A DNA stretch of 64,000 nt from sequence record PV740454.1. One strand, given 5' to 3'. The notes under the pieces were generated by a model. That model made no database searches. It had not been told where the DNA came from and saw only the letters and a program-made list of their open reading frames with translations. Positions 7,376 through 62,731 of the stretch are shown here, piece after piece (the stretch's first letter is position 1; the number at the start of each line of letters is the position of its first letter). The position numbers and the translations under genes were made by a program.

Positions 7376-7590
7376 TGGGCAATTTTGTAAGATCAACAGA
7401 AGATATGTGTCGCGACTTTCGCGCTGAGTTAAATCAAGCTGCGTGTTCACGTTCTGACTACTATCTTGTTCAGTTATATGCTGCATTTTTGACATTTGGA
7501 TTTGCATGTCAAATCGCGATATTCATTGCATTTTATGTCGTTTTTTGCATACCAACAACTGCGTTAGCTCGCTTGTTCGGGATTAAATAA
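7369..7590 (+). CDS. Hypothetical membrane protein
   Basis: Hydrophobic C-terminal half. Confidence 0.55.
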   Translation: MVMGNFVRSTEDMCRDFRAELNQAACSRSDYYLVQLYAAFLTFGFACQIAIFIAFYVVFCIPTTALARLFGIK

Positions 7591-7608
7591 CAGACGGAGG
7601 TGGCAATT

Positions 7609-7869
7609 ATGCTAAAGTCTTTTATTGAACTGAACGAAATGACATACCAAGAGTTGCGTGATCTCACGATCAATGAGATTCACGCACTTGTTAAGAAGCT
7701 GAAGCGACAGCTTCCTAAAGAGTACAAAGACATTATCGATCTACTTGAACCAGACATGTACGAAGATCTGATTGCAGAAATCGCATATGATGGTGGGTTG
7801 AAAGGTAAGAAATTTACAAATTTGAAGATCCCAAAGCGAATCTTAGATAGGTACGCTGACTACTTTTGA
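7609..7869 (+). CDS. Candidate internal head protein
   Basis: N-terminus MLKSFIELNE resembles the capsid-targeting sequence; ATTAAATA at 7582; GGAGG RBS. Confidence 0.55.
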   Translation: MLKSFIELNEMTYQELRDLTINEIHALVKKLKRQLPKEYKDIIDLLEPDMYEDLIAEIAYDGGLKGKKFTNLKIPKRILDRYADYF

Positions 7870-7879
7870 GAGAAATATT

Positions 7880-8266
7880 ATGTTTGACGCTGCTAGTGTT
7901 CGCGGTAATTATCACAGGAAGCAAAGTCCAGAACATCAAAAAGAAATCAACGAACTGCAAGATTTTTTGTTTAACACGTTGATGACTATTGATAAGATAT
8001 CTAAAACAGAGCTTGAAACTAATTTTGGTGTTCCTGCGAAATTTTATGAAATAGTTGTTGACGAGTTAGAGAATTTAGGTTATCATGTTAGAGCAGTGCA
8101 AGATACGTATCATTTAGATAACATGCTTGACTTGCGAAAACCATCAAAATTCGAATACATCACGTACAAATCACACGAAGACGCAGTAAGACACGTCAAT
8201 AGTGTTCTTCGTGCCGGTGACAATACTCGAATGATACTAACACGAATATCTTGGAGACGAGCATGA
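7880..8266 (+). CDS. Hypothetical protein
   Basis: GAGAG RBS; 128 aa. Confidence 0.65.
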   Translation: MFDAASVRGNYHRKQSPEHQKEINELQDFLFNTLMTIDKISKTELETNFGVPAKFYEIVVDELENLGYHVRAVQDTYHLDNMLDLRKPSKFEYITYKSHEDAVRHVNSVLRAGDNTRMILTRISWRRA

Positions 8267-8523
8267 TTACAGCGGAAAAAGCAAGAGCGAGAGCAATTCG
8301 CAACCTGAAGTTGCAATTCGATACTGAAGATCTCGAACACGTCGAAGACAAAATTTACGAAGCTGTTGATGAGTGTCGTTTCGCAATCACAATCAAAATG
8401 AATGATGAAATGCCGAACACAACGAGTCACAAGCACAAACGTCTTCTAATCGAGTATCTACGACTGAATGGCTACAATGCGTTTTATGTCGCTGACATTT
8501 TGGAGATTCGATGGCAGATCTAA
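8263..8523 (+). CDS. Small hypothetical protein, MITAxxAR family
   Basis: MITAEKARAR...YLRLNGY...LEIRW parallels 7145..7375. Confidence 0.65.
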   Translation: MITAEKARARAIRNLKLQFDTEDLEHVEDKIYEAVDECRFAITIKMNDEMPNTTSHKHKRLLIEYLRLNGYNAFYVADILEIRWQI

Positions 8524-9239
8524 AAGTTTATTACTGTAGTGACATTCACAACGATTATCACGAAACAAACGCGCTAGAAACGCTTGTAGGCGACAAGAAT
8601 GCTGTACTAGTAGTAGCGGGTGACATTAACAGCAAAGGGCGCACTGTGCGCGATTTAGAAGCTGTTGCTGATCGCTGGCGTGCTATTATAGCAGTGCCTG
8701 GTAATCACGACTGGTGGGGTCTTGCTATTCACGAGACTCACAAGTTCGAAACTACGCTTGACAATGTGCATGTGCTAATGGAAGACACTGTTGTTATTGA
8801 CGACGTGACATTCTGTGGTACTACACTGTGGCATGAAATCAACGACTGGTTTGAAGGTCAGCGTTGGAAAGAGACAATGAACGACCGTAAAAAGATTCGG
8901 GGACCTCAGTGGCGCGGATTATATGGCGAAGACGTTCATGCAATGCATAAACAAGCTGTTAAGTTCATTGAGAAATGTCGTGATATTGAAGGCAAGAAAG
9001 TGCTTATTACGCATCACGCACCGTCACGCAAGAGCATTTCGTCGTATTATCTTTATTCGCCGACGAATAGTTTTTATTGCACTGACCTCGAACACTTGCT
9101 AGAGGGGTTTGATTTTGCAATTCATGGTCATGTTCATCAAGAATTTGACTATCACGTAAATGGCTGTAATGTAGTGTGTAACCCACATGCATACGGCTCA
9201 GAAAACCCAGAATATGGGATTAGGATTTTTGACATATGA
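8511..9239 (+). CDS. Calcineurin-like metallophosphoesterase
   Basis: SDIH, AGDI, PGNHD, THHAP, HGHVH motifs. Confidence 0.9.
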   Translation: MADLKVYYCSDIHNDYHETNALETLVGDKNAVLVVAGDINSKGRTVRDLEAVADRWRAIIAVPGNHDWWGLAIHETHKFETTLDNVHVLMEDTVVIDDVTFCGTTLWHEINDWFEGQRWKETMNDRKKIRGPQWRGLYGEDVHAMHKQAVKFIEKCRDIEGKKVLITHHAPSRKSISSYYLYSPTNSFYCTDLEHLLEGFDFAIHGHVHQEFDYHVNGCNVVCNPHAYGSENPEYGIRIFDI

Positions 9240-9451
9240 TGTTTTTGACACTGTACATTCTAATTGGTGCTCTATTGACAATTGCAATGGGTGACCGTCT
9301 TGATGACAACTTTAAACAGATCTCTGATGGTGAAGCTTCAAATACTGCGATCAAAATCTTTTCGGTATTTGCATCACCGCTGCTTGCAGTAGTGCTGATC
9401 ATCGTATATATCGTTAAATTTGGTATGCTTATTGTGAAAAAAGCTGATTAA
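9236..9451 (+). CDS. Hypothetical two-TM membrane protein
   Basis: Two hydrophobic segments. Confidence 0.55.
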   Translation: MMFLTLYILIGALLTIAMGDRLDDNFKQISDGEASNTAIKIFSVFASPLLAVVLIIVYIVKFGMLIVKKAD

Positions 9452-9496
9452 ATTGTCATTAAATACGTGCGTCAATTAATAATCAAAAGGTAAAAT

Positions 9497-9742
9497 ATGA
9501 CGCACGATTTGAATATGCTTCTAGAGCAGTACAACCTCGCGAATTACGAATGCGACGGTGATTTTGAAGACTATTACTGGTCGGTTGCAGAATGGATTGG
9601 TCAGACTGTATTCAGTCATGGAACGATTCGCAAGCACGATATCCTTGAATTGCTATGCGATTTACTTGAAATATCAGAAGATGACATCAATGTCGATGAC
9701 GTTGATGAGTTTCTTTCTGAAGCTTATGAGGTACTTGATTAA
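9497..9742 (+). CDS. Hypothetical acidic protein
   Basis: AAGG RBS; 81 aa. Confidence 0.6.
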   Translation: MTHDLNMLLEQYNLANYECDGDFEDYYWSVAEWIGQTVFSHGTIRKHDILELLCDLLEISEDDINVDDVDEFLSEAYEVLD

Positions 9743-9801
9743 TGAAGAAATTTCATCGTAAGGAGTTGTTTCACTGAGTAACTTAACTTGGAGAAACAAC
9801 A

Positions 9802-10314
9802 ATGACAGAACCAAAACTGTACAAAGGCGTAAAAGAAAAAGATCTACCTGTTTACACCTCGCGTGAATTTGGCTACAAATACATCTACAAAGATTATGAA
9901 GGTGGTTGGGTTCCTGAGTGGGCAAGAACTTACGTTCGCTATGAGAAATGGCTGACGATGCGCTTAGCAGTCGGATTTTACATTTCTAGCGAGGCAAACC
10001 GCATCATTCGTCTGATGCGTACTGGTGAGCGCCTAGCACGTCACAAAGGCAACTACGTGTTTCGTTACACGCCAGTTCCACACACTGGTGGTCGCAAACA
10101 ATGGGTTTCAGCTAATCGCGGAAAAGGCTTGATGTCTCAGATTCACCACGATCAAATGTGTGTTGATGAGATTGAAACAGAATACGGCAAAGTGGTACGT
10201 AAAAAGCGTGCTCTTACCGTTCGTCGTCTTCGCGATTGGGATGGGCTTACTCATTACGACGCGCCTCAGCGTAGTTGGAAACGCTCTAAAAAGCGTAAGC
10301 AGTGGATGAAATAA
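9802..10314 (+). CDS. Hypothetical basic protein
   Basis: GGAG RBS; Arg/Lys-rich C-terminus RSWKRSKKRKQW. Confidence 0.7.
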   Translation: MTEPKLYKGVKEKDLPVYTSREFGYKYIYKDYEGGWVPEWARTYVRYEKWLTMRLAVGFYISSEANRIIRLMRTGERLARHKGNYVFRYTPVPHTGGRKQWVSANRGKGLMSQIHHDQMCVDEIETEYGKVVRKKRALTVRRLRDWDGLTHYDAPQRSWKRSKKRKQWMK

Positions 10315-10320
10315 AGAAAA

Positions 10321-10353
10321 GGGTTGACAGATGTCAGCCCTTTTTAGTAATAT
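10321..10353 (+). promoter_or_regulatory. Terminator-promoter cassette (same GGGTTGACAGATGTCAGCCC hairpin as at 2062)
   Basis: TTGACA 10324, TAATAT 10348, U-tract after the stem. Confidence 0.75.
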
Positions 10354-10377
10354 AGATGTTTTCATAGGAGAATATCT

Positions 10378-10578
10378 ATGTTATATCAAATTTTAATAGC
10401 GACATTTTGTGTTATTACAATATTCATATCAGCAATACCGCTGGTATATGTGATTGACAAGATCATTGAAGATAAATTCGATTCAACTGCAAGCGGAGCA
10501 CTCGCATTATTAGCAACCGTTGCTGTGTTTTGTTTAACTTTTATTTCAGTTGTCTTTGCTGGCGCTGAGTACATGTAA
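10378..10578 (+). CDS. Hypothetical two-TM membrane protein
   Basis: AGGAG RBS; hydrophobic. Confidence 0.6.
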   Translation: MLYQILIATFCVITIFISAIPLVYVIDKIIEDKFDSTASGALALLATVAVFCLTFISVVFAGAEYM

Positions 10579-10591
10579 CGAGAAATATATT

Positions 10592-11188: not shown

Positions 11189-11212
11189 GACAAACTGAAT
11201 TCATAGTACAAT

Positions 11213-11236: not shown

Positions 11237-11247
11237 ATGAGGTCTAT

Positions 11248-13044: not shown

Positions 13045-13052
13045 TATAAATA
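13045..13052 (+). promoter_or_regulatory. T4-type late promoter
   Basis: Exact TATAAATA 24 nt upstream of ORF 13076. Confidence 0.8.
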
Positions 13053-13075: not shown

Positions 13076-13963
13076 ATGATTATTTTTGAACATCACGACT
13101 CGCTTGTTGAAGCTTTTACTACACCTGCTCCGTATCGTTGGGCAGATGATAATAATATTGTGTTCAGAGTCGGGTCAACGAATTACCAGGCTAATATCAA
13201 CTCATACGAGAACAGAAACACGCAGAGTCGAAATATAGACGTGTCATTTCAATGGCAGACTGAAAGCGGTAGATGGACGTTCACATTGAAAAAAGGTGAC
13301 AATCCGAAAGACGCACTTACAGTGATCAGTACAATTCTAGCTGCTACATTTGAAAAGGAAGCGAAAGAGAAGCCAGATACGATTTCGTTTAGTGCGTTCA
13401 CCGATGACAATGATAGAGACGCACAGAAGCGTTTCAAACTTTACAAACGAATTGCTGAGCGTTATGCAAAAGAGCGTAATTACACACTACAAGTTCATGA
13501 TCGTTCTTTTCTTCTAACTAATAACGCGAAACCAAGTCAGATGAGAAGATTCCCGAACGACGGCGTTATTGAAGAAGACGGTCTTGTTTATGCTGAATTC
13601 CCGCGTGTCAATGCGTTCACATGGGCTAAAATGTTCTGGCTTGACAATGCAGGTGATTACATCGACTTGTCTCTACCACATGGTCGTGTTAAGGTGACTC
13701 GAACATCAGAAGATGTAGTCACTGTCGATGGGCGCAACGCAGAAGGCAAAATCGATAACTTAGATAGCTCTTATGTATGGCTGAGTATGCTTGGTGAGAT
13801 TAAAGTTCGTTCACGAACCGGTCGAGAATTCACATTGCCTGAAAGGGGTGTTATGCTTGACGCTGGTGACATGATTTTGTGTGACGATAAGACAATATAT
13901 TACTTGTCAGATGAAGAAATGTTCGGTGATATTTGGGGTTACGACATCGTAGAAATCGTATAA
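13076..13963 (+). CDS. Late protein, paralogous family member A (candidate internal/injected protein)
   Basis: Shares DALTV..T...ISFSAF.D..D.DA.KR..LYKR.AER with 50359 and 51282. Confidence 0.7.
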   Translation: MIIFEHHDSLVEAFTTPAPYRWADDNNIVFRVGSTNYQANINSYENRNTQSRNIDVSFQWQTESGRWTFTLKKGDNPKDALTVISTILAATFEKEAKEKPDTISFSAFTDDNDRDAQKRFKLYKRIAERYAKERNYTLQVHDRSFLLTNNAKPSQMRRFPNDGVIEEDGLVYAEFPRVNAFTWAKMFWLDNAGDYIDLSLPHGRVKVTRTSEDVVTVDGRNAEGKIDNLDSSYVWLSMLGEIKVRSRTGREFTLPERGVMLDAGDMILCDDKTIYYLSDEEMFGDIWGYDIVEIV

Positions 13964-13993: not shown

Positions 13994-15652
13994 TCATGGT
14001 ACTAGAGGACTACGCTCTTTAACCAATCGTTCTTCGTCAACCGTTGGTTCGGCTGCACGCATGAAGTCAGCGACTTCAGTTAGTTCATGAATTCGTTCTT
14101 GTCGTTTACGTTCAGAAAGAACACTGAATTTTTCATGTTTGTTCTTTTTCTTCAGTCTGATGACTGCATCGAATTCAGAAAGTTGAATCAGCTCAGCTTC
14201 AAACAATGTATTGCGATTGATGATGAATTCGCAATCACCTTTCTTCCCATGCTTACCTGTTGCAAGAATCGGCAAACCTTCAGCTTCGATAACAAACACA
14301 ACGTTCAATTTCTTATCAGATTCAATCATATCTCGCATTGACGATTTGCTATTTTTATCGATTGCATTCACGATAGTTTTCGATGATGATTCAACGAAGT
14401 TACATGCAACAATGGGGTTTGTGGATGATGAAATAAACGCAGTAGACGCGAATACCCCAGATTCAAGAATCGCACCGACTCGCTTGCTGCTCATTTCAGC
14501 ACCGCGATACAATGTCATTTCACTAGAAATCTTACCAGCTTCAGCAAACGCATGATCTAGACGTTTAATGATGTCTGATGCTTTATCAGATTCAACGCCA
14601 TGTACTAGTGCTTCGTTTACTTTCCACGCATATCTAGACGCCGAATAGCGAGAGATTGCAGCTTGTGTAAGTGCTCCAAGCCCAGCGAATGAATCTTCTT
14701 GCATCAATAGAATAGAAAGACGCTCATATTGCGCTTCAAGAGCACGAGAACGCGATTCAAGTAAGCAATTGAATACATCACTAGGGTTTTTAGATTCGTG
14801 TATGTACGAGTTTATAGAGTTAGCAAGAGCTGGTAGCTCAAGATTCATGTCAATCAATCCTTGTGCAGCCATTGCGATTTTTGACTCAGATTCGTTTAAT
14901 GCAATTTCAGTTAAACGCGCATTGTGTGATGTACTGTAATGTGATTCGAGTTGTGGCATTTGAAGAACCGCGTTCGGAACACGAGCAGCAGGATTATCGC
15001 CAACCCACGTATCGAGAACAACATCGTCATAGTCATCATATTCAGCACCAGCAGTAACGATGATTGTTTTCTTGCTTGAAATGTCAGTTTCTTGGGACAT
15101 TTTAGCAGCAATCATGTTTACCGTTTCTTCAGACGCTTCAAATAGCTTGTCAGCGTTGTAGCCTGGTTTTGTGATGACGAAGTAGCTGAAGTCATCAACC
15201 ATTTCAGATGAACCATCGTTGACGATTTTAGTCGTTTCACATCCGTAGCGTAGTTTTTTGAATAACGTTTTTACGCGCATATCAAACATTTTACCACTAC
15301 CTAGCTTTTGAATACGCATCGATACAACGTTAGCACGACGACCGAGCATGAATTCGTAAACAAGAGTTACAATAGTTTCAATTAGTTTTTGCTGGTCACC
15401 CATTTCACGAATGGTTAACCCGCCTTTCTTTCCGCGCATTGCAGAAACAGTACAGAACCAGCTACGTTTTCCACGATTGCCGATGTCTGATTTAGTTTTA
15501 GTAGTGAACGAAACAACGATGTCCCTAGCTTCGCCTTTCATATCGATCACAAAGAATTTGTTTTCTTTGGTCGAGCGAGCCGGATAGAAGTCGTATGTCG
15601 CGCTCATGTTTTCTGTTAATTGTTGATATCCAATCATTTTGTATAGACTCAC
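13994..15652 (-). CDS. alt: Alt-like ADP-ribosyltransferase (start may be the ATG at 15637)
   Basis: TLYRG, FISSS and DCEFII (R-S-E clade ART); N-terminus resembles T4 Alt; LTE cleavage-like site; CATAAATA on minus strand at 15671-15678. Confidence 0.75.
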   Translation of the reverse strand: MSLYKMIGYQQLTENMSATYDFYPARSTKENKFFVIDMKGEARDIVVSFTTKTKSDIGNRGKRSWFCTVSAMRGKKGGLTIREMGDQQKLIETIVTLVYEFMLGRRANVVSMRIQKLGSGKMFDMRVKTLFKKLRYGCETTKIVNDGSSEMVDDFSYFVITKPGYNADKLFEASEETVNMIAAKMSQETDISSKKTIIVTAGAEYDDYDDVVLDTWVGDNPAARVPNAVLQMPQLESHYSTSHNARLTEIALNESESKIAMAAQGLIDMNLELPALANSINSYIHESKNPSDVFNCLLESRSRALEAQYERLSILLMQEDSFAGLGALTQAAISRYSASRYAWKVNEALVHGVESDKASDIIKRLDHAFAEAGKISSEMTLYRGAEMSSKRVGAILESGVFASTAFISSSTNPIVACNFVESSSKTIVNAIDKNSKSSMRDMIESDKKLNVVFVIEAEGLPILATGKHGKKGDCEFIINRNTLFEAELIQLSEFDAVIRLKKKNKHEKFSVLSERKRQERIHELTEVADFMRAAEPTVDEERLVKERSPLVP

Positions 15653-15724
15653 CCTTTAGAAATATATGAGTATTTATGGTAGTTAGTGAAGCTTGATTAA
15701 AAAAATACCACTTTTTGTTTAAAA

Positions 15725-15775
15725 AGTGCTTGAAATGTCCATCGGATGATCGTAATATGTGTTCATCGAAACGAA
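15725..15775 (+). promoter_or_regulatory. Sigma70-type early promoter
   Basis: TTGAAA(15730)-N17-TAATAT(15753), then CATCGAAACGAAA leader. Confidence 0.7.
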
Positions 15776-15800
15776 ATACACAACTCAGAGAGTACAAATT

Positions 15801-16378: not shown

Positions 16379-16424
16379 AAACACATCAAGACGAGATACA
16401 CAAACTACTTAAAGAGAGAACATT

Positions 16425-17692: not shown

Positions 17693-18586
17693 ATGACTGT
17701 ATCTACTAGTAACGGTTTACCAGACATTGTGACTGTTCAAAAACGTCTTTATCCGTTAATCTTTACGGAGATCGTTTCTGAGCAGGTAACAAAACAACCA
17801 GTAGCAACCGCTTACGGATTCAAAGCTGTATCTGAAGCTGACGACGGTAGTGGTTGGACTCAATTCGGATTCAGACTTGACCGTTGGTATACTGAAGTTA
17901 AATCTTCAAAAATGAAGACTGAAATCTCACTTGAAACAATTCAAGATCTGCAAGCTCTTGGTGTTAATACTAACATCATTGCTGGGTCATTAGCTGACCA
18001 AATTGCAGATGAGATCAATACTGACATCATCAATGCACTGAACGGCATTTCAACAGTTGGGACAGCTCTTGTACTTGCTGGCACAACAGACTTTGACAAA
18101 GGTCAAGATCTGTATGCTAAAGTTCACGTGTCTGCTGCTGAAATTGAAAAATCAACTGGATGTCAAGGCACTTATGTAGTTGCTGGCGGAAAATGCTTCG
18201 GTCTACTTACCGGATGTGGTGTTGTTAGGAAAATCAGCGATACTGTTTACCAGGCATGGTCTGGATTGTACATCGTACACGATAAATATGCAACGTCTGA
18301 TTATGTGACAGTTGGCGTTAAGAAAGAACTTGGTGATTATGAGATCTCAAGTATCGTATTCAGCCCATATGTCTTTGACAGCGAAAACGAAGGCGCAATT
18401 GCTTATCAATACAAGGGAACTGATCCAAAATCATTCCACTCTGTGTATGGTGTTATTTCACGATACGCACTGACAGTTGCTCCACTTGAAGAAACTCAAA
18501 CTGGCGCAGTGGAAATCGATTGGGACAACCTTGGCGCATTAGCGAACAGTTCTAAGCTGTCTTACACTCATGCAGTGACAGTATAA
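17693..18586 (+). CDS. 24: Capsid vertex protein, gp24-like (short form)
   Basis: gp23/24 family signatures (LIFTEIVSEQVTKQPVATAYG; LADQIADEINTDII; VVAGGK; SIVFSPY); late promoter upstream. Confidence 0.75.
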   Translation: MTVSTSNGLPDIVTVQKRLYPLIFTEIVSEQVTKQPVATAYGFKAVSEADDGSGWTQFGFRLDRWYTEVKSSKMKTEISLETIQDLQALGVNTNIIAGSLADQIADEINTDIINALNGISTVGTALVLAGTTDFDKGQDLYAKVHVSAAEIEKSTGCQGTYVVAGGKCFGLLTGCGVVRKISDTVYQAWSGLYIVHDKYATSDYVTVGVKKELGDYEISSIVFSPYVFDSENEGAIAYQYKGTDPKSFHSVYGVISRYALTVAPLEETQTGAVEIDWDNLGALANSSKLSYTHAVTV

Positions 18587-19119: not shown

Positions 19120-20565
19120 ATGTTAGGTAACTTTGACTCATTTCTGAGTGAAAATCGCCGTCAAACTCAGGGTGGTAAAATCTACCCTAAGTTTGGTCAA
19201 GTTATTGTTGAGCTAGGCACTGCATCTACTGAGTTCAGCAACGGCAAAGGCGTTGAAACAACTATCGGCATGATGGAAAAGGCAAATGAGCTTAAATCTA
19301 TCATGGAACAAAAGCTATGTGAAGATCCAAACGTTAATCATAATATGTTTGACATGAATCTGAGTGAAAATGTAAGCACCGTCAACTTGCTTATGGAAAA
19401 CGAATTCCTAGCAATGCCAGCGCATTCACTACAGCAAGTTAAGTCGATGATCATGTGTACTGAAGCGCGCCTTCCGAGTCTTGTGATCAAAGGCGGCGAC
19501 TTGAATAAGGTTGTGACTGAAGCAACTAAGCTTGGGTACAAGCAAAAAGACATCCACGTTGTTATCCCAATGAACGAAATGAAAATCGTTCTTGCAGATT
19601 CGGATAAGTTGATCATCGAATCACTTTCATTTGATGATAAAACAGCGTCTGAAGTTCTTGCACAAGCTGCTCCGATCAATCTTGGTGACATTTACGTTAC
19701 AGTTGAAAACGTAGTAAGTGAAGCACAACTTTCAGAAATGAAAGAGATCAAGATCAAGACAGCGAATCGCGCAATGACTCTAGGGTCTCTTAATCGTCAT
19801 GTCATGGAGCACTTCGTTGTTAAAGAAGCGAAAGAAGTTTCATATGCGCGTGAAGTAGCAAAAGACACTGGTCTACCAATGCTAGAAGGGTTCAAAGCAT
19901 ACGACTTCAAGCGTAACGTCACTATGTTCGAACATGCACAAAACGTATTCACTAAAGAAATCGGACGTGCGCCGATGACTGCGACTGCATGGCAAAATCT
20001 AGTTGATGTTAAAGAAGCGTATTTCGACAACGGTTGGAAGCTAAAGCATAACAACACTAGCATTGTTCTTACAAATGCTCGTGACGCAATGCGTGCTAAT
20101 CGTGTGTGTGAAGAATATCGCGTTGAGCTATCAGAAGCTGGCTACCCACTTCTTGACATGGTAGCAATGATGGAACGCAAAGGCGTTAGACACTTCGATT
20201 GTCAGTCATTTGCTAAAGCAATGATGGAATTTGATGGTTGTGTTACACCAGAGCGTCAGACTGTGACTGCATTCGTTACTGAATCTGCCGCGAATCGTGT
20301 ATTCCACCCGCAATTTATGTCTAGTCTACGTCCAGTGACTGAAATGGTTGATAGTGTCGATGAGCTTGTACGCGCACTTGCAAATGACCAGTTCAGTGAA
20401 TTTCGTGTTTCTGAGTCGATTGCTGAGTCAATGCTAGATAAAGAAACTCTTTACAGCATGATGGAGAAAATCATCAGTGAAGGGGTTGACGTTAATATCG
20501 ATGGTAAGCTAGTTGAATTCACTGTTGCTGATACTAAATACAGCATTAAAGTTGATATTAAGTAA
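19120..20565 (+). CDS. Hypothetical 481-aa protein, candidate internal head protein
   Basis: MLGNFDSFLSE capsid-targeting-like N-terminus; KIYPKFGQVIV recalls a degenerate P-loop kinase start. Confidence 0.6.
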   Translation: MLGNFDSFLSENRRQTQGGKIYPKFGQVIVELGTASTEFSNGKGVETTIGMMEKANELKSIMEQKLCEDPNVNHNMFDMNLSENVSTVNLLMENEFLAMPAHSLQQVKSMIMCTEARLPSLVIKGGDLNKVVTEATKLGYKQKDIHVVIPMNEMKIVLADSDKLIIESLSFDDKTASEVLAQAAPINLGDIYVTVENVVSEAQLSEMKEIKIKTANRAMTLGSLNRHVMEHFVVKEAKEVSYAREVAKDTGLPMLEGFKAYDFKRNVTMFEHAQNVFTKEIGRAPMTATAWQNLVDVKEAYFDNGWKLKHNNTSIVLTNARDAMRANRVCEEYRVELSEAGYPLLDMVAMMERKGVRHFDCQSFAKAMMEFDGCVTPERQTVTAFVTESAANRVFHPQFMSSLRPVTEMVDSVDELVRALANDQFSEFRVSESIAESMLDKETLYSMMEKIISEGVDVNIDGKLVEFTVADTKYSIKVDIK

Positions 20566-20573: not shown

Positions 20574-21221
20574 ATGAAAAAATTCAATGCATTTTTGACT
20601 GAAGTTCAGAAATACAGCTCAGCGGCAACGTCTATCAAAGGTAAAGAAGTAGCAGCGTTAGTTAAATTGTTTAAGTCAGGCATGTTCGTGCCTGACGGAA
20701 CTGCACTTGACTACGGTGCGGGTAAATACGGTCGTAACGCTGAATTTTTGCGTTCTCAAGGTATTCGTACTTACGCATATGACAAGTTCAACGGTACGTC
20801 TGCTGACGGTTGGGATGCAGTTAGCTTGTCTGTACCTTCTGGTATGACATTCGACACTGGATTTACTTCATACGTTCTTAACGTTGTTCCAGAGTCTGTT
20901 GAAGCTGAAATCATTCGTGAAGTCGAGTCGTTAACAACTGGCAAAGTGTTCCACATCACTCGTGGTACTGACATTACACAAACTGTGTTCAATGTGATTT
21001 CTGGTAAATCTAAAAATGACGTGATGATGCAGTTCGTTGCTCAAGAATATCCAGAGATTTATGGTCAGATTGTCGCTAACGGCGGTACTAAAGAATTAGC
21101 TAAAGAAATTGCAACTCGTGGTGTTGTAACAGCTAAAGACAGCTTTCAACGTATTCCAGACTTATCAAAGTACGGTTACAGAAAGTCTGGTTCAGGCGCA
21201 TCTGTCGTGTGGACAAAATAA
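20574..21221 (+). CDS. Class I SAM-dependent methyltransferase with capsid-targeting-like N-terminus
   Basis: ALDYGAGKYG (motif I), AYD (II), FTSYVLNVV (IV); N-terminus MKKFNAFLTE. Confidence 0.8.
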   Translation: MKKFNAFLTEVQKYSSAATSIKGKEVAALVKLFKSGMFVPDGTALDYGAGKYGRNAEFLRSQGIRTYAYDKFNGTSADGWDAVSLSVPSGMTFDTGFTSYVLNVVPESVEAEIIREVESLTTGKVFHITRGTDITQTVFNVISGKSKNDVMMQFVAQEYPEIYGQIVANGGTKELAKEIATRGVVTAKDSFQRIPDLSKYGYRKSGSGASVVWTK

Positions 21222-21242: not shown

Positions 21243-21318
21243 GGGTTGCTTCGGCAGCCCTTTTTTTGTATTATAGCTTTATCGAAACGACATCGACTAA
21301 CAAAGAGAGAACATTATG
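21243..21318 (+). promoter_or_regulatory. Terminator-promoter cassette with conserved leader (copy 2)
   Basis: GGGTTGC-TTCG-GCAGCCC-T7; TTGCTT(21246)-N17-TATTAT(21269); 52-bp leader identical to 2088..2139. Confidence 0.85.
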
Positions 21319-36887: not shown

Positions 36888-36963
36888 GGGTTGCTTCGGC
36901 AGCCCTTTTTGCGTATTATAGCTTTATCGAAACGACATCGACTAACTAAGAGAGAACATTATG
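36888..36963 (+). promoter_or_regulatory. Terminator-promoter cassette with conserved leader (copy 3)
   Basis: GGGTTGC-TTCG-GCAGCCC-T5; TTGCTT-N17-TATTAT; leader 51/52 identical to copy 1. Confidence 0.85.
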
Positions 36964-57642: not shown

Positions 57643-58250
57643 TGTGCGGTTTATTTGCTGCTAGAAGCAAGCAAGAGCTTATTGAATTATCAAAAAGCAA
57701 TCTACATCGTGGTTCGCGTACTCACTCTGTGAGTACGTTTAAAAACGGTCATGTGTCAGTGCATAAATTCACTGGTGCATTCGATCCAGTTAATGTTCCT
57801 GACAGTGCAGATTTCTATATCTGTCACGTACAAGCACCAACTGGAACTAGTGCGCAAGCACACCCAGCTATTGTAACAGTCGAAGAGAACGGTCAGTTAC
57901 ACGACTCACACGTGTGGCATAATGGTATTCTCAAAGATCATTACATGAAAAAGCAGACTCAAGATTGGGATACTGCACACATTGCTGAAGCTATTTGCTA
58001 TGGCAAATTGAATGAGCTTGACGGTACATTCGCGTGTTTTCACTTCATCAACGGCAATTTACGTGTGTTTCGTAATGAAATCAGCCCGTTGTTCATGAAC
58101 GAAGACGGTACAGCATTCAGTAGCACTAAGACGATTCTAACACCGTATCATGTTGATGCGAATAAAGTGTTTAATATCGACTTACGAACATTTAAACTAT
58201 CGGTAGTGAGTGAGTTCAAGACACTCGAAAATCCATATTTCTTTTTGTAA
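57642..58250 (+). CDS. Class II (Ntn) glutamine amidotransferase
   Basis: MCGLF (Cys2 nucleophile); HRG; CHVQAPT; HP; WHNGIL; GTFA; TAATG coupling to queC. Confidence 0.85.
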   Translation: MCGLFAARSKQELIELSKSNLHRGSRTHSVSTFKNGHVSVHKFTGAFDPVNVPDSADFYICHVQAPTGTSAQAHPAIVTVEENGQLHDSHVWHNGILKDHYMKKQTQDWDTAHIAEAICYGKLNELDGTFACFHFINGNLRVFRNEISPLFMNEDGTAFSSTKTILTPYHVDANKVFNIDLRTFKLSVVSEFKTLENPYFFL

Positions 58251-58259
58251 GGTAACATC

Positions 58260-58831: not shown

Positions 58832-59038
58832 ATGGCTACAGACAAAGAATTACTCGATGACGTAAACAACTACTGGATTGGTTGGGATCAACGTGGTCCC
58901 GAGAGTCGTGATTACGACATCGAACATGGTAATATGCGCAAGAAATGTCGTGAGTTTGAAGAACGTAAGAAAGAAACAGACGCACGAATTGCAGCATTTG
59001 AAGAAGCACGAAACAAATATAAAAGGCAAGAACAATGA
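58832..59038 (+). CDS. Hypothetical protein
   Basis: 68 aa ORF coupled to gp31. Confidence 0.55.
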   Translation: MATDKELLDDVNNYWIGWDQRGPESRDYDIEHGNMRKKCREFEERKKETDARIAAFEEARNKYKRQEQ

Positions 59039-59367: not shown

Positions 59368-59371
59368 GTCA

Positions 59372-59761
59372 ATGAATGACAATTTGCGAATGATTGAAGT
59401 GTCTGCTGTAGGTTACTACAGCAACGCTACTGCTGCACACACGTGTTGGGTAACTGAAGAGTTCGTCGAGAAGTATAAAGACGACATCAAAGCATTTGAT
59501 TTTTACTTCAGCGATCTAGATGGTAAGCATTCTGAAACACATGCTGAAGTGAACATCCTTGAACATTCAAAAGAAATGGCACTTGCTTGGAGCGAGTCTC
59601 AAGGTGAATGTTGGGCAATCACAGAATGCATGTTTGATGAATTCGAATTCGATTCTGCTGACATTGAAGAAATGATCGCGTTGAACGAAGACATGAACAA
59701 CACGATTGAAGTCAAGACACAAACAATAATCACAATCGGAACTGAAACTATCGTTGTATAA
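59372..59761 (+). CDS. Hypothetical acidic protein
   Basis: GAGG RBS; 129 aa. Confidence 0.65.
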   Translation: MNDNLRMIEVSAVGYYSNATAAHTCWVTEEFVEKYKDDIKAFDFYFSDLDGKHSETHAEVNILEHSKEMALAWSESQGECWAITECMFDEFEFDSADIEEMIALNEDMNNTIEVKTQTIITIGTETIVV

Positions 59762-59790
59762 TCAAACGAAAAGTGAAAGCATAGTTACAC

Positions 59791-59817
59791 AAAAGGGAGC
59801 AAATTGCTCCCTTTTTT
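59791..59817. terminator. Bidirectional terminator
   Basis: AAAAGGGAGC-AAATT-GCTCCCT6; same stem as 13962..13991. Confidence 0.85.
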
Positions 59818-60322
59818 ATTCCTCTTCCTCATAACCATACTTGTTGCTTCTGAAGTCACAACGTGGGTTATTCAAGAAACTCTTTCTGTAAATCTTTTCC
59901 AAATCACTCTTCTTAGCACCATCTGGATATTTCAATCCAAGACTATCTAAATGATCTTTCTGCTCTTGCAGTTTCAATCGACTGAAGATCTTAGTTTGGT
60001 CTTTTGGATGCTGTGGATGATAGTCATTATCTGAATAATCAGCACTTAGATACTCAACTAGATTGGTAAGCCACTCAAGATAATCGATACCTTTACCTTT
60101 CAGCCCAGAGCGCGTGAACTTATGAATCAAAACACCCTCGTAAGTGTTACATGCTCGGCACAGAACACCGCGTATATGACCTGATTCGTGGTCGTGGTCA
60201 GTATGTGGTGTGCTTTTCTCTTCGCTTAGCTTAGTACCGCACAGAACGCATTTATCAAGCTGACTCATGATTAATTCATTGCGACATTCGGTAAGGTCTG
60301 ATTGTTTTAATTGTTTGCTCAT
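59816..60322 (-). CDS. 49: Recombination endonuclease VII (Holliday junction resolvase)
   Basis: CVLC...DHDHESGHIRGVLCRACNTYEG; YHPQH; HEH-like tail. Confidence 0.92.
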   Translation of the reverse strand: MSKQLKQSDLTECRNELIMSQLDKCVLCGTKLSEEKSTPHTDHDHESGHIRGVLCRACNTYEGVLIHKFTRSGLKGKGIDYLEWLTNLVEYLSADYSDNDYHPQHPKDQTKIFSRLKLQEQKDHLDSLGLKYPDGAKKSDLEKIYRKSFLNNPRCDFRSNKYGYEEEE

Positions 60323-60398
60323 CTTTTTCTCAAAAAGTTATTGACTATGCTATTGTTTATATGTACAATACGAAAGCAATTTCTAATAAGGAAATAAC

Positions 60399-60653
60399 AT
60401 GAACGCAAGACAACTAAGAAAACGACTTGAAGATCTAGCATTATGTGAATTTAGCCCAGTCGAAGTTCGATACTTCGAAAGTGGTGCTGAATCGTATAAG
60501 TCAAAAGACTTTAAGTTTGAAGTAAATCCAGACGTATCAATCGTATTGATGTCTGATTCTGAAGGTCGTGTTGCATACACAGATTCAGAAATTGAAAATG
60601 TAATCGCGAGTCTAGAAAAAGACGCGCACGTTGAAAGATTTTTAGGCATTTAA
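60399..60653 (+). CDS. Hypothetical protein
   Basis: Promoter TTGACT(60341)-N17-TACAAT(60364); AGGA RBS. Confidence 0.65.
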   Translation: MNARQLRKRLEDLALCEFSPVEVRYFESGAESYKSKDFKFEVNPDVSIVLMSDSEGRVAYTDSEIENVIASLEKDAHVERFLGI

Positions 60654-60662
60654 GGTAACATT

Positions 60663-61646
60663 ATGAGCTTTGTGAAATACACATCATTAGAAAACAGCTA
60701 CCGTCAAGCATTCGTAGACAAATGTGATATGCTTGGCGTTCGTGATTGGGTCGCACTTGAGAAAATTCACGGTGCGAACTTCAGCTTCATCGTTGAATTC
60801 GACGGTGGGTACACTGTAACGCCCGCTAAGCGCACTTCTATCATCGGCGCTACTGCTACTGGAGATTACGACTTCTACGGCTGTACGAGCGTTGTAGAAG
60901 CTCACAAAGCGAAAGTAGAATCAGTCGCAAACTTCTTGTGGATGAATGAGCACATCAATTTGTATGAGCCGATCATCATCTATGGTGAGCTTGCAGGCAA
61001 AGGCATTCAGAAAGAAGTCAACTATGGTGATAAAGATTTCTGGGCGTTTGACATCTTCTTACCACAACGTGAAGAGTTCGTCGATTGGGATACGTGTGTT
61101 GCAGCATTCACAAACGCTGAGATCAAATACACGAAAGAACTTGGTCGTGGCACACTCGATGAGTTGCTTCGCATCGATCCCCTGTTTAAGAGCTTACACA
61201 CGCCCGCAGAGCACGAAGGCGATAACGTAGCAGAAGGGTTCGTTGTTAAGCAATTACACTCTGAGAAACGCTTACAGAGCGGTTCACGTGCGATTTTGAA
61301 AGTCAAGAACGAGAAGTTCAAAGAGAAGAAGAAGAAAGAAGGTAAAACTCCTACTAAACTCGTTCTAACTCCAGAACAAGAGAAGCTTCACGCTGAGTTT
61401 AGCTGCTACTTGACAGAAAACCGTTTGAAAAACGTACTAAGTAAGTTAGGTACTGTGAATCAGAAACAGTTTGGCATGATTAGCGGGCTATTTGTCAAAG
61501 ACGCCAAAGATGAGTTTGAGCGTGACGAACTCAACGAAGTAGCGATTGATCGTGACGATTGGAACGCAATCAGACGTTCATTAACGAATATCGCCAACGA
61601 AATCTTACGCAAGAATTGGTTGAATATTCTCGATGGGAACTTCTAA
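60663..61646 (+). CDS. rnlB: RNA ligase 2
   Basis: YTSLEN; EKIHGANFS; YGELAG; FDI; AEGFVVK; ILKVKNEKFKE. Confidence 0.96.
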   Translation: MSFVKYTSLENSYRQAFVDKCDMLGVRDWVALEKIHGANFSFIVEFDGGYTVTPAKRTSIIGATATGDYDFYGCTSVVEAHKAKVESVANFLWMNEHINLYEPIIIYGELAGKGIQKEVNYGDKDFWAFDIFLPQREEFVDWDTCVAAFTNAEIKYTKELGRGTLDELLRIDPLFKSLHTPAEHEGDNVAEGFVVKQLHSEKRLQSGSRAILKVKNEKFKEKKKKEGKTPTKLVLTPEQEKLHAEFSCYLTENRLKNVLSKLGTVNQKQFGMISGLFVKDAKDEFERDELNEVAIDRDDWNAIRRSLTNIANEILRKNWLNILDGNF

Positions 61647-61649
61647 CAA

Positions 61650-61844
61650 TTGAAAAAACGTGCTTGGTTCTTTGTTTTTTGTGGGATTGGGGCAATAAGC
61701 TACTTCGGTGGCTTATTTGTCGCGTCATTACTCATATTCGAATCCGTTGAAGCATCTATATTATTCATCATTCTAGTGTTTTTAGCTCTATTAAATACAG
61801 TCAGAGCAGGCATCGAAGATGATGAAAATAACAAAGCTCCTTAG
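61650..61844 (+). CDS. Hypothetical two-TM membrane protein
   Basis: Hydrophobic; TTG start. Confidence 0.45.
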   Translation: MKKRAWFFVFCGIGAISYFGGLFVASLLIFESVEASILFIILVFLALLNTVRAGIEDDENNKAP

Positions 61845-61869
61845 GGAGCTTTTTTTATGGGTGAACGAA

Positions 61870-62409
61870 ATGGCATTTTTAAAGAAAGAATTAGACACGA
61901 AAGACATCACAGAAGCAGACATGCAGTACGCAATAGCAGTGCAAAGCGTGTGGATTCACAAGCGATACACGGCAGTTATACCTAACTGCTATACTAAATG
62001 GGATAACGAAGCAGACTTGTTTGCTATTAGACCAAGTGGGTTGTGTGATGAGATTGAAATCAAGGTGTCTAAAGCTGATTTTCGCATTGACGAACAGAAG
62101 TCTGTCAAGGTGATTGATGAAAGTACACCAAATCTTCGGTGGCATCGTTATGAAGACGTTCCAAAACGCACAGCATTACAAGATGGGAAGATGAGCAACT
62201 ACTTTTGGTATGCATTCCCTAAGGGTCTTGTAGACCATGCTGAAGTTCCAGAATGGGCAGGTATCATCGAAGTCGATGGTTTCTTAAATGCAAGAGAAGT
62301 TAGAATGCCAAAGAGACTGCATGGTGGCAAAATGACAATCGAAGAGCAGTTAAAACAAATCAAGAAACTAGGTTACAGATTTTGGAATCTGGTTAAAAAG
62401 AACCGTTAA
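61870..62409 (+). CDS. MmcB-like PD-(D/E)XK nuclease-fold protein
   Basis: EADLFAI...EIEIKVSKADF...NYFWYAFP...WAGII. Confidence 0.7.
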   Translation: MAFLKKELDTKDITEADMQYAIAVQSVWIHKRYTAVIPNCYTKWDNEADLFAIRPSGLCDEIEIKVSKADFRIDEQKSVKVIDESTPNLRWHRYEDVPKRTALQDGKMSNYFWYAFPKGLVDHAEVPEWAGIIEVDGFLNAREVRMPKRLHGGKMTIEEQLKQIKKLGYRFWNLVKKNR

Positions 62410-62422
62410 CAAGGAAACAACA

Positions 62423-62731
62423 ATGAAAACATTCAATGAATTTTTAGCAGAAGCACAACACATGTATGAGCTACCACCTGGGTATGAAGTATTCGGTCTG
62501 GTGGATGTAGATGGGAAAGAGGTTGAACTGCACTCAGACGATGTGATGCGTGACGAATTAACAAAAATTGCAAACGCACGTAACGTAGCTATCGCAACTG
62601 GTGGTGTTTCTTCAGAAGAAGCAGGTGTATTGATCACTAAAGGCGGCAAAGAAATTGATTACTTCCCACATGAAGATAAAGCTAGTGGCCCACGCTTTAA
62701 AAACTTCGTGAAACGTCACTTCAAGGTCTAA
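62423..62731 (+). CDS. Probable internal head protein
   Basis: MKTFNEFLAE closely matches the T4 IP capsid-targeting sequence MKTYQEFIAE. Confidence 0.7.
   Translation: MKTFNEFLAEAQHMYELPPGYEVFGLVDVDGKEVELHSDDVMRDELTKIANARNVAIATGGVSSEEAGVLITKGGKEIDYFPHEDKASGPRFKNFVKRHFKV

Follow-up and report, generated by a model that had tools for sequence, protein, structure and literature searches.

The internal proteins of phage T4 carry short leaders at their N-termini: as read from record NC_000866, ipII and ipIII start with MKTYQEFIAE↓A and ipI with MKTFKEF...ITE↓A (arrows mark cleavage sites, which are predicted ones in the phage described here), while alt (MELITE) and gp68 (MLLIPE) have a shorter N-terminus. 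The canonical leader of the internal proteins is carried by non-essential, injected anti-restriction proteins (PMC12373910), and Alt is also injected into the host (PMC9026906).

The DNA that we have analysed, a stretch of 64,000 nucleotides to which we refer as the window, is 100% identical to Vibrio phage CZ01 (GenBank PV740454.1), which is close to nt-1 and belongs to the KVP40-like Straboviridae; the window represents the region with the replication and early genes in this T4 relative. An earlier note on this DNA had claimed that about ten dispersed genes carry T4-like capsid-targeting N-termini. All ten quoted peptides have been found exactly, with coordinates and strands as claimed, and the start codons of nine of the ten genes are those annotated in the identical record; the tenth gene, 50359 (genes are named here by their start position), begins with a GTG that precedes the annotated ATG at 50383 by eight codons, a start that is supported because KVP40.0115 has an ATG there and the 4-nt overlap is the same in nt-1 and 6E35-1b. 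[quoted passage not shown]

Two types of N-termini may be distinguished. The first, M-K-x-F-x-(E/A)-F-x-x-E, would be a true T4 IP-type capsid-targeting sequence and is found in three genes. Gene 62423 (CZ01_418, 62423..62731, plus strand, 102 aa) starts with MKTFNEFLAE↓A, the best T4-like targeting sequence, with 8/10 residues identical to T4 ipII/ipIII, and is, judging from its sequence, a candidate small accessory internal protein; it is present only in CZ01, nt-1, VS1/VS2 and QD01, it was not found at its locus in KVP40, and the locus in 6E35-1b holds a different leader-bearing gene, B0176, a plasticity that resembles that of the T-even IP loci. Gene 20574 (CZ01_346, 20574..21221, plus strand, 215 aa, phrog_14016; MKKFNAFLTE↓V), whose FLTE is kept in nt-1 and 6E35-1b and is FLAE in KVP40, is a candidate internal head protein of unassigned function. 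Gene 40448 (CZ01_379, 40448..42112, plus strand, 554 aa; MKLFTEFYQE↓VRLDE↓I) is supported as a HEAT/armadillo-like helical-repeat protein by homologues that contain PF02985 or are named armadillo-like helical protein. A form of the same type that is shifted by one residue, MKFSEY...L/M-x-E, may be recognised in 50359 and 51282, while the second type, a short Alt/gp68-type propeptide that would end at I/L-x-E, is proposed for Alt, 13076 and 45143 (minus strand).

The strict pattern of the T4 ipII/ipIII type (^MK.[FYL]..[FY]..E) matches 20574, 40448 and 62423 among the 109 window genes, with an expectation of 0.01 for random N-termini, and none of 316 internal-Met decoys; on the 85 kb of T4 examined as a positive control it recovers ipII and ipIII and nothing else, and in the whole of CZ01 all six matches sit on annotated gene starts. 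A looser pattern (aromatic-x-x-aromatic plus cleavage site) is matched by 6/109 genes, against 1.5-1.7 expected (P=0.002), bringing in 19120, 50359 and 51282; on the same T4 sequence, it adds ipI and one internal false match. The short class, [LI]-x-E by residue 9, stays at chance level (9 matches against 6-8 expected among the 109 genes, not significant), and it is the sole N-terminal pattern that 13076, 45143 and Alt match; [LI]-x-E alone is a weak signal, because 27/109 genes have one in their first 15 residues. The proposed excess of the motif over background is thus borne out for the strict and looser patterns and not for the short one.

The phrog_6387 family is represented in the window by three paralogues with a DUF6934-type N-domain: gene 51282 (CZ01_399, 51282..52118, plus strand, 278 aa; MKFSEYQNELNE↓AFDRP), its tandem paralogue 50359 (CZ01_398 with the revised GTG start, 50359..51279, plus strand, 306 aa; (M)KFSEYQRMNE↓SLDRP) and gene 13076 (CZ01_338, 13076..13963, plus strand, 295 aa; MIIFE↓HHDSLVE↓AFTTP), which adjoins alt. 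Throughout the family alignment, Glu is invariant at the predicted site, as is a Pro five residues further on, the junction being E↓A-F-(D/T)-R-P; in the 6E35-1b orthologue, a deletion puts MIIFE directly onto AFSRP. In the AlphaFold model of 13076, residues 1-14 (pLDDT <50) are disordered, a propeptide signature.

The Alt-like ADP-ribosyltransferase (13994..15637, minus strand, 547 aa, phrog_802 with E=8.6e-85; MIGYQQLTE↓N) matches T4 Alt by BLASTP (E=3e-6) over the LYR and SxS motifs of the ART core, and its L-x-E at residues 7-9 is kept in KVP40, nt-1 and 6E35-1b. Gene 45143 (CZ01_384, 44088..45143, minus strand, 351 aa, phrog_15811, function unassigned; MIIFE↓SVQSQRALE↓Y) runs opposite to its neighbours. 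The enzymatic diversity that had been proposed for the payload is accordingly narrowed to the ADP-ribosyltransferase, next to the helical-repeat protein: searches of Pfam, NCBIfam, PHROGs and PDB sequences found no methyltransferase or peptidase among the ten candidates. The sole M12 peptidase motif of the window is located in 47254, whose product carries a signal peptide but lacks a targeting sequence.

Two members are doubtful. The membership of 7609 (CZ01_326, 7609..7869, plus strand, 86 aa; MLKSFIELNE↓MTYQ) is uncertain; in its orthologues, the linker varies in length but ends in every case with [LF]-x-E, just ahead of a conserved MTYQELRDL. Gene 19120 (CZ01_345, 19120..20565, plus strand, 481 aa; MLGNFDSFLSE↓N) is probably outside the set. 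It does match the looser pattern described above, and F5 and L9 are invariant in homologues down to 38% identity; against membership, the cleavage Glu is replaced by Ala in one homologue, strong conservation extends through residues 12-44, no late promoter is located upstream, where gp55 precedes the gene, and its orthologue has no virion signal (see below). Residues 1-21 have low AlphaFold confidence, and a fold search gave no significant match.

All six late-promoter-like sites that had been claimed are present. A perfect T4-type core, TATAAATA, is located upstream of 13076 (13045..13052, plus strand), directly after a terminator hairpin. The site upstream of 40448 (TCTAAATA, 40413..40420, plus strand) is kept in nt-1, KVP40 and 6E35-1b, as is that of alt (CATAAATA, 15671..15678, minus strand); ACTAAATA occurs upstream of both 20574 (20533..20540, plus strand) and 45143 (45176..45183, minus strand), CTAAATA being kept at the latter in KVP40 and 6E35-1b. 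The site of 7609 (ATTAAATA, 7582..7589, plus strand) is a weaker call, because it overlaps the stop codon of the preceding gene. NNTAAATA is found within 80 nt upstream of 6/10 candidates, against 9/99 other genes (Fisher P=4e-4); no late promoter was found directly upstream of 62423, 50359 and 51282, and T4 ipI-III likewise lack TATAAATA within 50 nt. Most candidate genes have a late promoter of their own, and their proteins would therefore be made during prohead assembly.

The presence of the proteins in particles has been assessed from the published mass spectrometry of virions of a relative, Schizotequatrovirus 6E351A (bioRxiv 10.1101/2024.12.24.630238, Suppl. Tables 3 and 8). Its orthologues share 42-81% identity with the CZ01 proteins, and the orthology is confirmed by agreement in PHROG number, length and mass of the proteins. 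In these tables, the spectral counts, given in pairs, are 122/233 for the orthologue of Alt, whose virion presence is also noted by the preprint authors, 58/109 for that of 40448 (VP6E351A_0134), 31/79 for 20574 (VP6E351A_0103, same PHROG), 37/51 for 51282 (VP6E351A_0154), 16/61 for 13076 (VP6E351A_0094) and 18/25 for 45143 (VP6E351A_0140). Strong detection is listed for 6/8 candidate orthologue groups, against 2/101 other genes of the block (P=4e-7). The 6E35-1b protein B0176 has counts of 12/17, and all four strict matches of 6E35-1b are listed as detected in virions. The orthologue of 7609 (VP6E351A_0082; 3/0) is within background, and no signal is listed for those of 19120 (VP6E351A_0102) and of 42181, another gene with a short L/I-x-E-type N-terminus (MIIQDLTE). 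No orthologue of 62423 or 50359 was found in 6E351A; for 50359, which has none in 6E35-1, the virion evidence is at the family level, all three phrog_6387 paralogues of 6E351A (A_0094, A_0154 and A_0242) being listed in virions. The sample was PEG-precipitated, gradient purification not being mentioned in the passages on preparation, and the listed non-structural proteins reach about 16-23 counts (nicotinamide phosphoribosyltransferase 16/23, GTP cyclohydrolase 13/7, spanins 12/10, dUTPase 7/10), so that the orthologue of 45143, which is near the highest background proteins, and that of 13076, in one replicate, are little above background. The T4-type N-termini occur on many diverse proteins, which are, by orthology and as far as these tables cover them, mostly virion components, with 7609 marginal and 19120 absent.

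By analogy with T4, the leader would bind the gp22 scaffolding core, the gp21 protease would cut after the predicted Glu to free the mature protein inside the head, and this protein would exit with the DNA at the next infection; the targeting role, the exact cleavage sites, and the ejection into the host with action before phage gene expression are all inferred from that analogy. The gp21 protease and gp22 of CZ01 are 49% and 33% identical to those of T4, and the gp23 cleavage site LTE↓A of T4 aligns with LNE↓A. The candidate payload is larger than the earlier note supposed, since at least ten further leader-bearing genes are found elsewhere in the genome, most of them next to the tRNA cluster, like T4 ipI; many of them are small genes with late promoters in the tRNA region that adjoins the 57B/57A/gene 1 homologues.

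A second reading, tentative but the best placed of the alternatives, is that the leader targets only the three or four proteins with the canonical form, while Alt, 13076, 50359, 51282 and CZ01_265 enter the head by means of the DUF6934-type domain located behind the propeptide, the short propeptide being a processing site only. It agrees with the lack of enrichment of the short class and with the distribution of the phrog_6387 N-domain, which is widespread (962 proteins at E<=1e-3, identified as DUF6934), is often repeated inside very large multidomain proteins, and is C-terminal in CZ01_265, a virion protein by orthology (9/14 in the tabulated counts). The link to Alt is where this reading is strained: Pfam DUF6934 aligns with residues 15-140 of the window Alt at E=0.046, below threshold, and has no match in T4 Alt at E<=1, while the profile-profile comparison of the phrog_6387 family with Alt orthologues is not significant (E=0.79). 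The model of 13076 does match Alt-type ARTs of other T4-like phages, and also phage Zeta-toxin or ParB/Srx-domain proteins (Foldseek BFVD, E 3e-5 to 6e-4), but Foldseek does not give the matched part of the Alt proteins and the model is only moderately confident (pLDDT 71).

It is unlikely that the candidates are virion-associated assembly or structural parts (extra scaffold or core, head-size determinants, or DNA-condensing filler for a larger elongated head) rather than injected effectors that act on the host. The T4 core proteins gp67, gp68, gp22 and gp21, and their homologues in CZ01 and 6E35-1b, do have short L/I-x-E N-termini of the same type, and most candidates belong to the core gene set of the group (18/18 phages have the six that were looked up in Suppl. 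Table 8), which fits assembly better than an arms race. Scaffold proteins, however, are largely degraded and lost from mature particles, where the candidates remain, and the small leader-bearing genes vary strongly among related phages, as is typical of host-interaction genes. The KVP40 head exceeds that of T4 in size (PMC3012670), as a filler role would suit; Alt, on the other side, is an enzyme with an injected T4 homologue, and the canonical T4 leader sits on the dispensable, injected proteins cited at the outset.

It is very improbable that the virion signal is a carry-over of abundant late proteins that co-precipitate with PEG, the likeness to T4 leaders being convergent or functionless. 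In favour of a carry-over, the sample was precipitated in this way, its list includes non-structural enzymes and membrane proteins, and high levels at lysis are to be expected for the products of genes with late promoters. Against it, the over-representation of the strict pattern is about 300x and confined to true N-termini, and the motif predicts detection genome-wide (9/11 motif-positive starts against 85/433 other genes of 6E351A, P=2e-5). The tabulated counts per kDa, calculated by hand, also speak against it: the orthologues of Alt, 20574, 40448 and 51282 reach about 1.3-2.8, near the values for portal and tail tube (about 2.8-3.7), with the contaminating enzymes well below (about 0.3-0.5). 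The 481-aa orthologue of 19120, moreover, was not carried over in the listed data.

The preferred reading, a set of proteins packaged into the head, amounts to the expansion of a known system. With the T4 internal proteins, the CZ01 set shares a leader of about ten residues (most closely in 62423) that ends in a gp21-type L/I-x-E site, often followed by Ala, mutually unrelated cargos behind the common leader, small leader-bearing genes that cluster beside tRNA genes and 57B as does ipI, and a conserved gp21 protease and gp22 core; gene content differs among close relatives, as in the polymorphic ip loci of the T-even phages. It differs in number (about nine genes in the window and at least ten elsewhere, against three in T4), in the size of several cargos (215-554 aa, against T4 precursors of 95-193 aa), in that many genes are scattered singly between replication genes, have a late promoter of their own and count as core rather than accessory genes in the phage group, and in that the cargos have no sequence similarity to any T-even internal protein. 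The host also differs, being a Vibrio. Since a gene cluster for 7-deazaguanine synthesis is present in the phage, its DNA is probably not modified like that of T4, and targets like T4's GmrSD-type enzymes are not to be assumed.

The window Alt resembles T4 Alt in its ART core and phrog_802 assignment, in the location of its gene next to DNA ligase gene 30, on the opposite strand and with a late promoter, in a short N-terminus ending in L-x-E, and in the abundance of its orthologue in the tabulated virions, T4 Alt being packaged as well; it differs in length (547 against 682 aa, with only about 100 residues aligned by BLASTP), in the weak DUF6934 match of its N-terminal region, and in its neighbour, a gene of the 13076 paralogue family where T4 has the alt.-1/alt.-2 fragments. 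The giant phages phiKZ, 201phi2-1 and SPN3US also have a large, diverse collection of proteins inside the head (ejection (E) or inner-body proteins), which a gp21-related protease processes after Glu (PMC9026906), as is predicted in CZ01; their sites, however, are S/A-x-E with long propeptides, the short conserved T4-type leader has not been described for them, and CZ01, which has the head genes of T4, is a true relative of that phage.

The ten candidate genes, which are named here by their start coordinates in the window, with (-) marking the minus strand (7609, 13076, Alt at 15637(-), 19120, 20574, 40448, 45143(-), 50359, 51282 and 62423), belong to a T4 relative (family Straboviridae), in its region of replication and early genes: the window corresponds to CZ01 183139-247138 (PV740454.1), an 8-kb megablast matches CZ01 at 100%, nt-1 at 97% and KVP40-type phages at about 80%, and its genes extend from thymidylate synthase, by way of ligase, alt, gp55, gp46/47, the polymerase accessory genes, gp43, rnlA, pseT, a 7-deazaguanine cluster, gp31 and gp49, to rnlB. 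Each of the ten N-termini that the earlier note had quoted is present, nine of them at annotated starts, and so are all six of its promoter-like octamers. Nine of the ten genes, i.e. all but alt, are listed as “hypothetical protein” in the records of CZ01, nt-1, KVP40 and 6E35-1b (the genome used here for gene matching), and alt is also listed as such in the KVP40 RefSeq record.

The start at 50359 is a GTG located eight codons upstream of the annotated CZ01_398 start (ATG 50383); it yields MKFSEYQRMNE and has a 4-nt overlap with the stop codon of the upstream gene. Since KVP40.0115 has an ATG at the equivalent position, and since the 4-nt overlap is also kept at the start of the single gene that nt-1 and 6E35-1b have here, GTG 50359 appears to be the better start, and CZ01_398 as annotated probably lacks its first eight codons. 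KVP40.0116 and 6E35-1b B0393, conversely, look as though they were annotated too long, with a leader-like methionine located 11 and 10 codons downstream, respectively.

The T4 N-termini, taken directly from NC_000866, read as follows (↓, cleavage position): MKTYQEFIAE↓A in ipII and ipIII, MKTFKEF...ITE↓A in ipI, MELITE in alt, MLLIPE in gp68, MEGLIE in gp67, MLKEQLIAE↓A in gp22 and MAKINELLRE↓S in gp24. The first ten residues of T4 IPIII are enough for packaging, with targeting depending chiefly on the aromatic residues 4 and 7 and processing on residues 8 and 10, and gp21 cleaves after L/I-x-E (PMC9026906). In T4, the leader binds the scaffolding core, gp21 removes the leader and the proteins exit with the DNA (PMC9026906, PMC3012670, PMC12373910); all three internal proteins disarm type IV restriction enzymes (PMC12373910).

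All ten candidates have an N-terminus that is closed by an L/I-x-E motif, conserved in their orthologues. The aromatic 4/7 leader is found in its strict form (^MK.[FYL]..[FY]..E) in 20574, 40448 and 62423, i.e. in 3 of the 109 window genes, versus 0 of 316 internal-methionine decoys and 0.01 expected from random N-termini; as a control, ipII and ipIII are the sole matches of this pattern in the examined 85 kb of T4, and it occurs at six annotated gene starts in the whole of CZ01 and in four genes of 6E35-1b. A looser pattern, i.e. aromatic-x-x-aromatic followed by a cleavage site by residue 20, adds the shifted or looser leaders of 19120, 50359 and 51282 (6/109 versus 1.5-1.7 expected, P=0.002). 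The remaining four candidates, 13076, 45143(-), Alt and 7609, are without the aromatic 4/7 leader and have a single aromatic residue and L/I-x-E only. By residue 9, [LI]-x-E occurs in 9/109 genes versus 6-8 expected, which is no significant excess, and within the first 15 residues it occurs in 27/109 genes versus about 14-20 expected, a weak signal when taken alone. Since the N-termini of 13076, 45143(-) and Alt offer only this short motif, sequence alone picks six genes, three of them very strongly; the claim that T4-like N-termini occur above chance holds for these six and not for the short [LI]-x-E of 13076, 45143(-) and Alt. Conservation of the first 12 residues relative to the rest of the protein is mixed: it is higher in Alt, 19120, 40448, 45143(-) and 51282, and lower in 20574 and 7609. 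Directly downstream of 40448, at 42181-42444, an 87-aa protein begins with MIIQDLTE (L-x-E at residues 6-8); its orthologue A_0135 is absent from the virion list of 6E351A, a related Schizotequatrovirus, which shows that packaging is not predicted by an N-terminus with a short L-x-E and nothing more.

The candidates are also linked to late promoters: the late-promoter-like NNTAAATA is located no more than 80 nt upstream in 6/10 candidates versus 9/99 other genes (P=4e-4), and among the nine others are two genes that one would expect to be late, a spanin gene and the gp24-like head gene. Both alt and 45143 read opposite to their neighbours; late genes that are embedded in the early regions of T4 often lie on the opposite strand. 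A different repeated element, ATCGAAACGA.AT..AC.AAC followed by a AGAGAGAACATT-type ribosome-binding region, is located about 35 nt upstream of several early-gene starts (copies at 2101-2121, 15765-15785, 16385-16405, 21281-21301, 36926-36946 and 52202-52222; 8 matches versus 0.36 expected), with three copies identical over more than 40 nt; these are probably the mobile promoter-stem-loop (PeSL) cassettes that are known from nt-1 and KVP40 (PMC4122927).

The head machinery that would act on such leaders is conserved. CZ01 encodes gp20, gp67, gp68, gp21, gp22 and gp23 in T4 order, the prohead protease and core genes (gp21, gp22, gp67, gp68) being CZ01_254-257, with identities to T4 of 49% for gp21, 33% for gp22 and 38% for gp68. 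The gp23 maturation site LTE↓A of T4 aligns with LNE↓A in CZ01, and the 6E35-1b proteins gp68, gp21 and gp22 begin with MKFITE, MELLIE and MQIKEQLLE; on the basis of the gp21 identity, the gp23 site and these N-termini, the specificity of the protease is conserved, and so is the use of short propeptides at the N-terminus.

Independent experimental evidence on virion presence comes from a Schizotequatrovirus preprint, which reports tandem mass spectrometry on PEG-precipitated 6E351A particles and whose only comment on these proteins is that Alt is in the particle (10.1101/2024.12.24.630238). Its Supplementary Table 3 reports, for 94 proteins, the spectral counts of two replicates, and its Table 8 gives length, PHROG and abundance per gene (10.1101/2024.12.24.630238); we matched the window genes to 6E351A through the near-identical 6E35-1b genome by tblastn, length, mass and PHROG number. 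The counts (replicate 1/replicate 2) are 122/233 for the orthologue of Alt (A_0095), 58/109 for that of 40448 (A_0134), 37/51 for 51282 (A_0154), 31/79 for 20574 (A_0103), 18/25 for 45143(-) (A_0140) and 16/61 for 13076 (A_0094); that of 7609 (A_0082) is marginal at 3/0, that of 19120 (A_0102) is not detected in the 6E351A virions, and 62423 and 50359 are without an orthologue in 6E351A. Enzymes and membrane proteins in the dataset reach up to about 16-23 counts, so the orthologue of 45143, and that of 13076 in one replicate, stand only moderately above the background, and the counts of the 7609 orthologue fall within it. In the block equivalent to the window, 6/8 candidate groups are strongly detected versus 2/101 other genes (P=4e-7), these two being the gp24-like head protein and B0176, which starts with MKKFNEFAKELEE; genome-wide, 9/11 annotated starts that fit the looser pattern are detected versus 85/433 others (P=2e-5). 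Virion presence, as judged by the 6E351A orthologues, is therefore found for Alt, 13076, 20574, 40448, 45143(-) and 51282, while the earlier proposal is not supported for 19120 and is marginal for 7609. The gp24-like gene itself (17693-18586) is remote from the head gene cluster, being flanked by glutaredoxin and gp55, and is preceded by TATAAATA at a distance of 66 nt. Its product is a short “gp24” head vertex paralogue of 297 aa with the Gp23 fold, whose 6E351A orthologue is abundant in virions (90/145).

Two members are doubtful. The protein of 19120 fits the looser pattern, with F5 and L9 invariant down to 38% identity. Against its membership, conservation is unbroken across residues 12-44, one homologue has an alanine where cleavage would occur, a late promoter is lacking and the 478-aa orthologue is not seen in virions; the N-terminus is modelled at low confidence. 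Probably this protein is not packaged, or its copy number in the particle is very low. In 7609, a linker of variable length, always ending in [LF]-x-E, precedes the conserved MTYQELRDL; the linker looks like a propeptide, but the virion signal is marginal.

The claim of an unusually large payload gains from a scan of the whole CZ01 genome, which yielded at least ten more leader-bearing genes outside the window: CZ01_014 (MKTFNQFVSE), CZ01_196 (MKTYNEFKKLNE), CZ01_200 (MKTFSEFQE), CZ01_210 (MKTFDEFVTE), and CZ01_184, _189, _183, _010, _015 and _162. TAAATA-type promoters are located upstream of 8/10 of these genes, and 6/10 lie at 90-100 kb amid tRNA genes, adjoining the homologues of 57B, 57A and gene 1, the same position that ipI occupies in T4. 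In the matching region of 6E35-1b, B0396 (MKTLQEFLAE↓A), B0393 (internal start MKTLAEFLGE↓A) and B0382 are detected in virions with 6/10, 12/13 and 14/15 counts, respectively. In both CZ01 and 6E35-1b, the tRNA region is dense in small leader genes, with precursors of 59-103 aa, near-canonical T4 leaders and TATAAATA/CTAAATA promoters, and its leader-gene content is almost wholly different between the two phages; it looks like the counterpart of the T-even ipI hyperplastic locus. Seven CZ01 leader genes have no orthologue in 6E35-1b, namely 62423, five genes of the tRNA region and one other gene, the last six all lying outside the window. The gene 62423 is found only in CZ01, nt-1, VS1/VS2 and QD01 (five phages, six records); KVP40 has nothing at this locus and 6E35-1b has a different leader-bearing gene there. 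This pattern in CZ01 and 6E35-1b matches the polymorphic ip loci of the T-even phages, where the leader is conserved and the cargo is swapped. At CZ01 73777-74883, a single 368-aa leader-bearing gene (MKNLKSFMEELQLVTE) is annotated in 6E35-1b as two overlapping genes, B0358/B0359, for whose counterpart the 6E351A proteome table lists a single 43-kDa protein; this suggests that 6E35-1b has a frameshift here or that its annotation was split.

The cargos show no significant similarity to each other, apart from the paralogues of phrog_6387. Alt matches phrog_802 (E=8.6e-85, residues 279-545) and T4 Alt by BLASTP (E=3e-6, with the LYR and S-x-S stretch aligned), while Pfam ADPrib_exo_Tox is reached at E≤1 by T4 Alt and not by the window Alt; judged by these alignments, it is an Alt-type ART with a predicted R-S-E type domain homologous to T4 Alt. 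The protein of 40448 is a helical-repeat protein, whose homologues carry Pfam HEAT or are named armadillo-like. For the nine candidates other than Alt, searches of Pfam, NCBIfam and PDB sequences gave nothing significant, and relatives of known function are not detectable for 20574, 45143(-), 62423 and 7609. The diverse payload described earlier accordingly retains its ART and its helical-repeat protein, and neither a methyltransferase nor a peptidase is found among the ten. We rejected a methyltransferase in 20574 (TIGR04096, 14.5 bits versus a cut-off of 150), a Zeta/PezT-kinase-like fold in 19120 (PDB fold search E=0.02, TM 0.12-0.3; not credible) and a phrog_6387 N-domain in 40448 (weak BLAST similarity, unconfirmed by a local HMM); the weak GNAT-like matches of the 13076 model (best E=0.014 in the PDB fold search, TM about 0.24) are a hint at most. 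The M12 peptidase motif of the window (Pfam, reprolysin-like metallopeptidase) is located near the C-terminus of a 451-aa protein at 47254-48609, whose N-terminus (MKKALLALALVCSTSASA) resembles a signal peptide; this protein is without a capsid-targeting leader, and by gene size and order no orthologue is seen in the equivalent block of 6E35-1b.

The paralogues 13076, 50359 and 51282 form phrog_6387, in whose alignment an invariant glutamate at the predicted cleavage site is followed by A/S-F/L-D/T-R/T-P; in 6E35-1b, the orthologue of 13076 has MIIFE joined to AFSRP by loss of the residues in between, with an I-x-E↓A junction retained. A profile of the phrog_6387 N-domain finds 962 proteins at E≤1e-3; the match covers the N-terminal 140 residues and is often repeated in proteins of 800-2200 aa with Pfam DUF6934, which in these large proteins reaches E-values down to 1e-48. 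When PF22028 (DUF6934) is searched directly, the gathering cut-off of 27 bits is exceeded by the paralogue B0243 of 6E35-1b, with 32.5 bits, while 50359 (21.2 bits) and CZ01_265 (19.3 bits) remain under it and 13076 and 51282 have no match, so that the DUF6934 membership of the paralogues rests on transitive evidence. CZ01_265, another protein whose orthologue occurs in virions, has the domain at the C-terminus. The AlphaFold model of 13076 (pLDDT 71, residues 1-14 disordered) matches, in a viral structure library, the Alt-type ARTs of other T4-like phages, as well as phage proteins with Zeta-toxin or ParB/Srx domains. Pfam DUF6934 also aligns weakly to residues 15-140 of the window Alt; hhalign of the phrog_6387 family against the Alt orthologues is not significant, and because of this negative profile-profile test a shared architecture of propeptide, DUF6934 and variable domain is a lead and not a result. 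We consider it rather unlikely that the leader and a DUF6934-type domain form a portable “head-loading” module common to Alt, the three phrog_6387 paralogues and CZ01_265, the domain being fused in other phages, often in multiple copies, to varied effector domains (ART, GNAT, Zeta-toxin-like, ParB/Srx) in very large proteins; if so, DUF6934 would mark virion-packaged injected effectors across many phages, and KVP40-like phages would deliver about twenty different proteins per infection, a far richer first-strike payload than that of T4.

Injected proteins, which enter with the phage DNA, act ahead of all phage gene expression. By analogy with T4, the CZ01 leader would bind the scaffolding core, gp21 would remove it after the predicted glutamate, and the mature proteins would leave with the DNA into the host, as the T4 internal proteins and Alt do (PMC9026906, PMC12373910), where they may act early on the host. 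The 7-deazaguanine (queuosine-precursor) cluster at 53030-58250 (QueD-like, DUF5591, GTP cyclohydrolase I, a 458-aa unknown, QueC and a 202-aa unknown) suggests a modified guanine in the phage DNA, which bears on the host restriction systems that injected proteins might counter.

In the full-text literature searched, no paper describes a capsid-targeting sequence in phages of the KVP40 type; such N-termini may be mentioned in the genome paper of KVP40 (Miller et al. 2003), which lies outside that search. The main value of our findings is a list of candidate injected proteins, in a phage whose host, Vibrio natriegens, is a tractable and non-pathogenic laboratory species: once the leader is recognised, some twenty hypothetical proteins in each genome become ranked candidates for injected host-takeover or anti-defence factors, and other relatives of T4 can be searched for such proteins by a simple rule on the sequence. 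The leader may also serve as a tag for loading foreign proteins into these large heads. What we describe is the capsid-targeting and internal-protein system of T4 in a distant relative, i.e. a known mechanism extended and not a new one; compared with T4, the system of CZ01 has many more members, larger cargos, and genes that are dispersed and read from late promoters.
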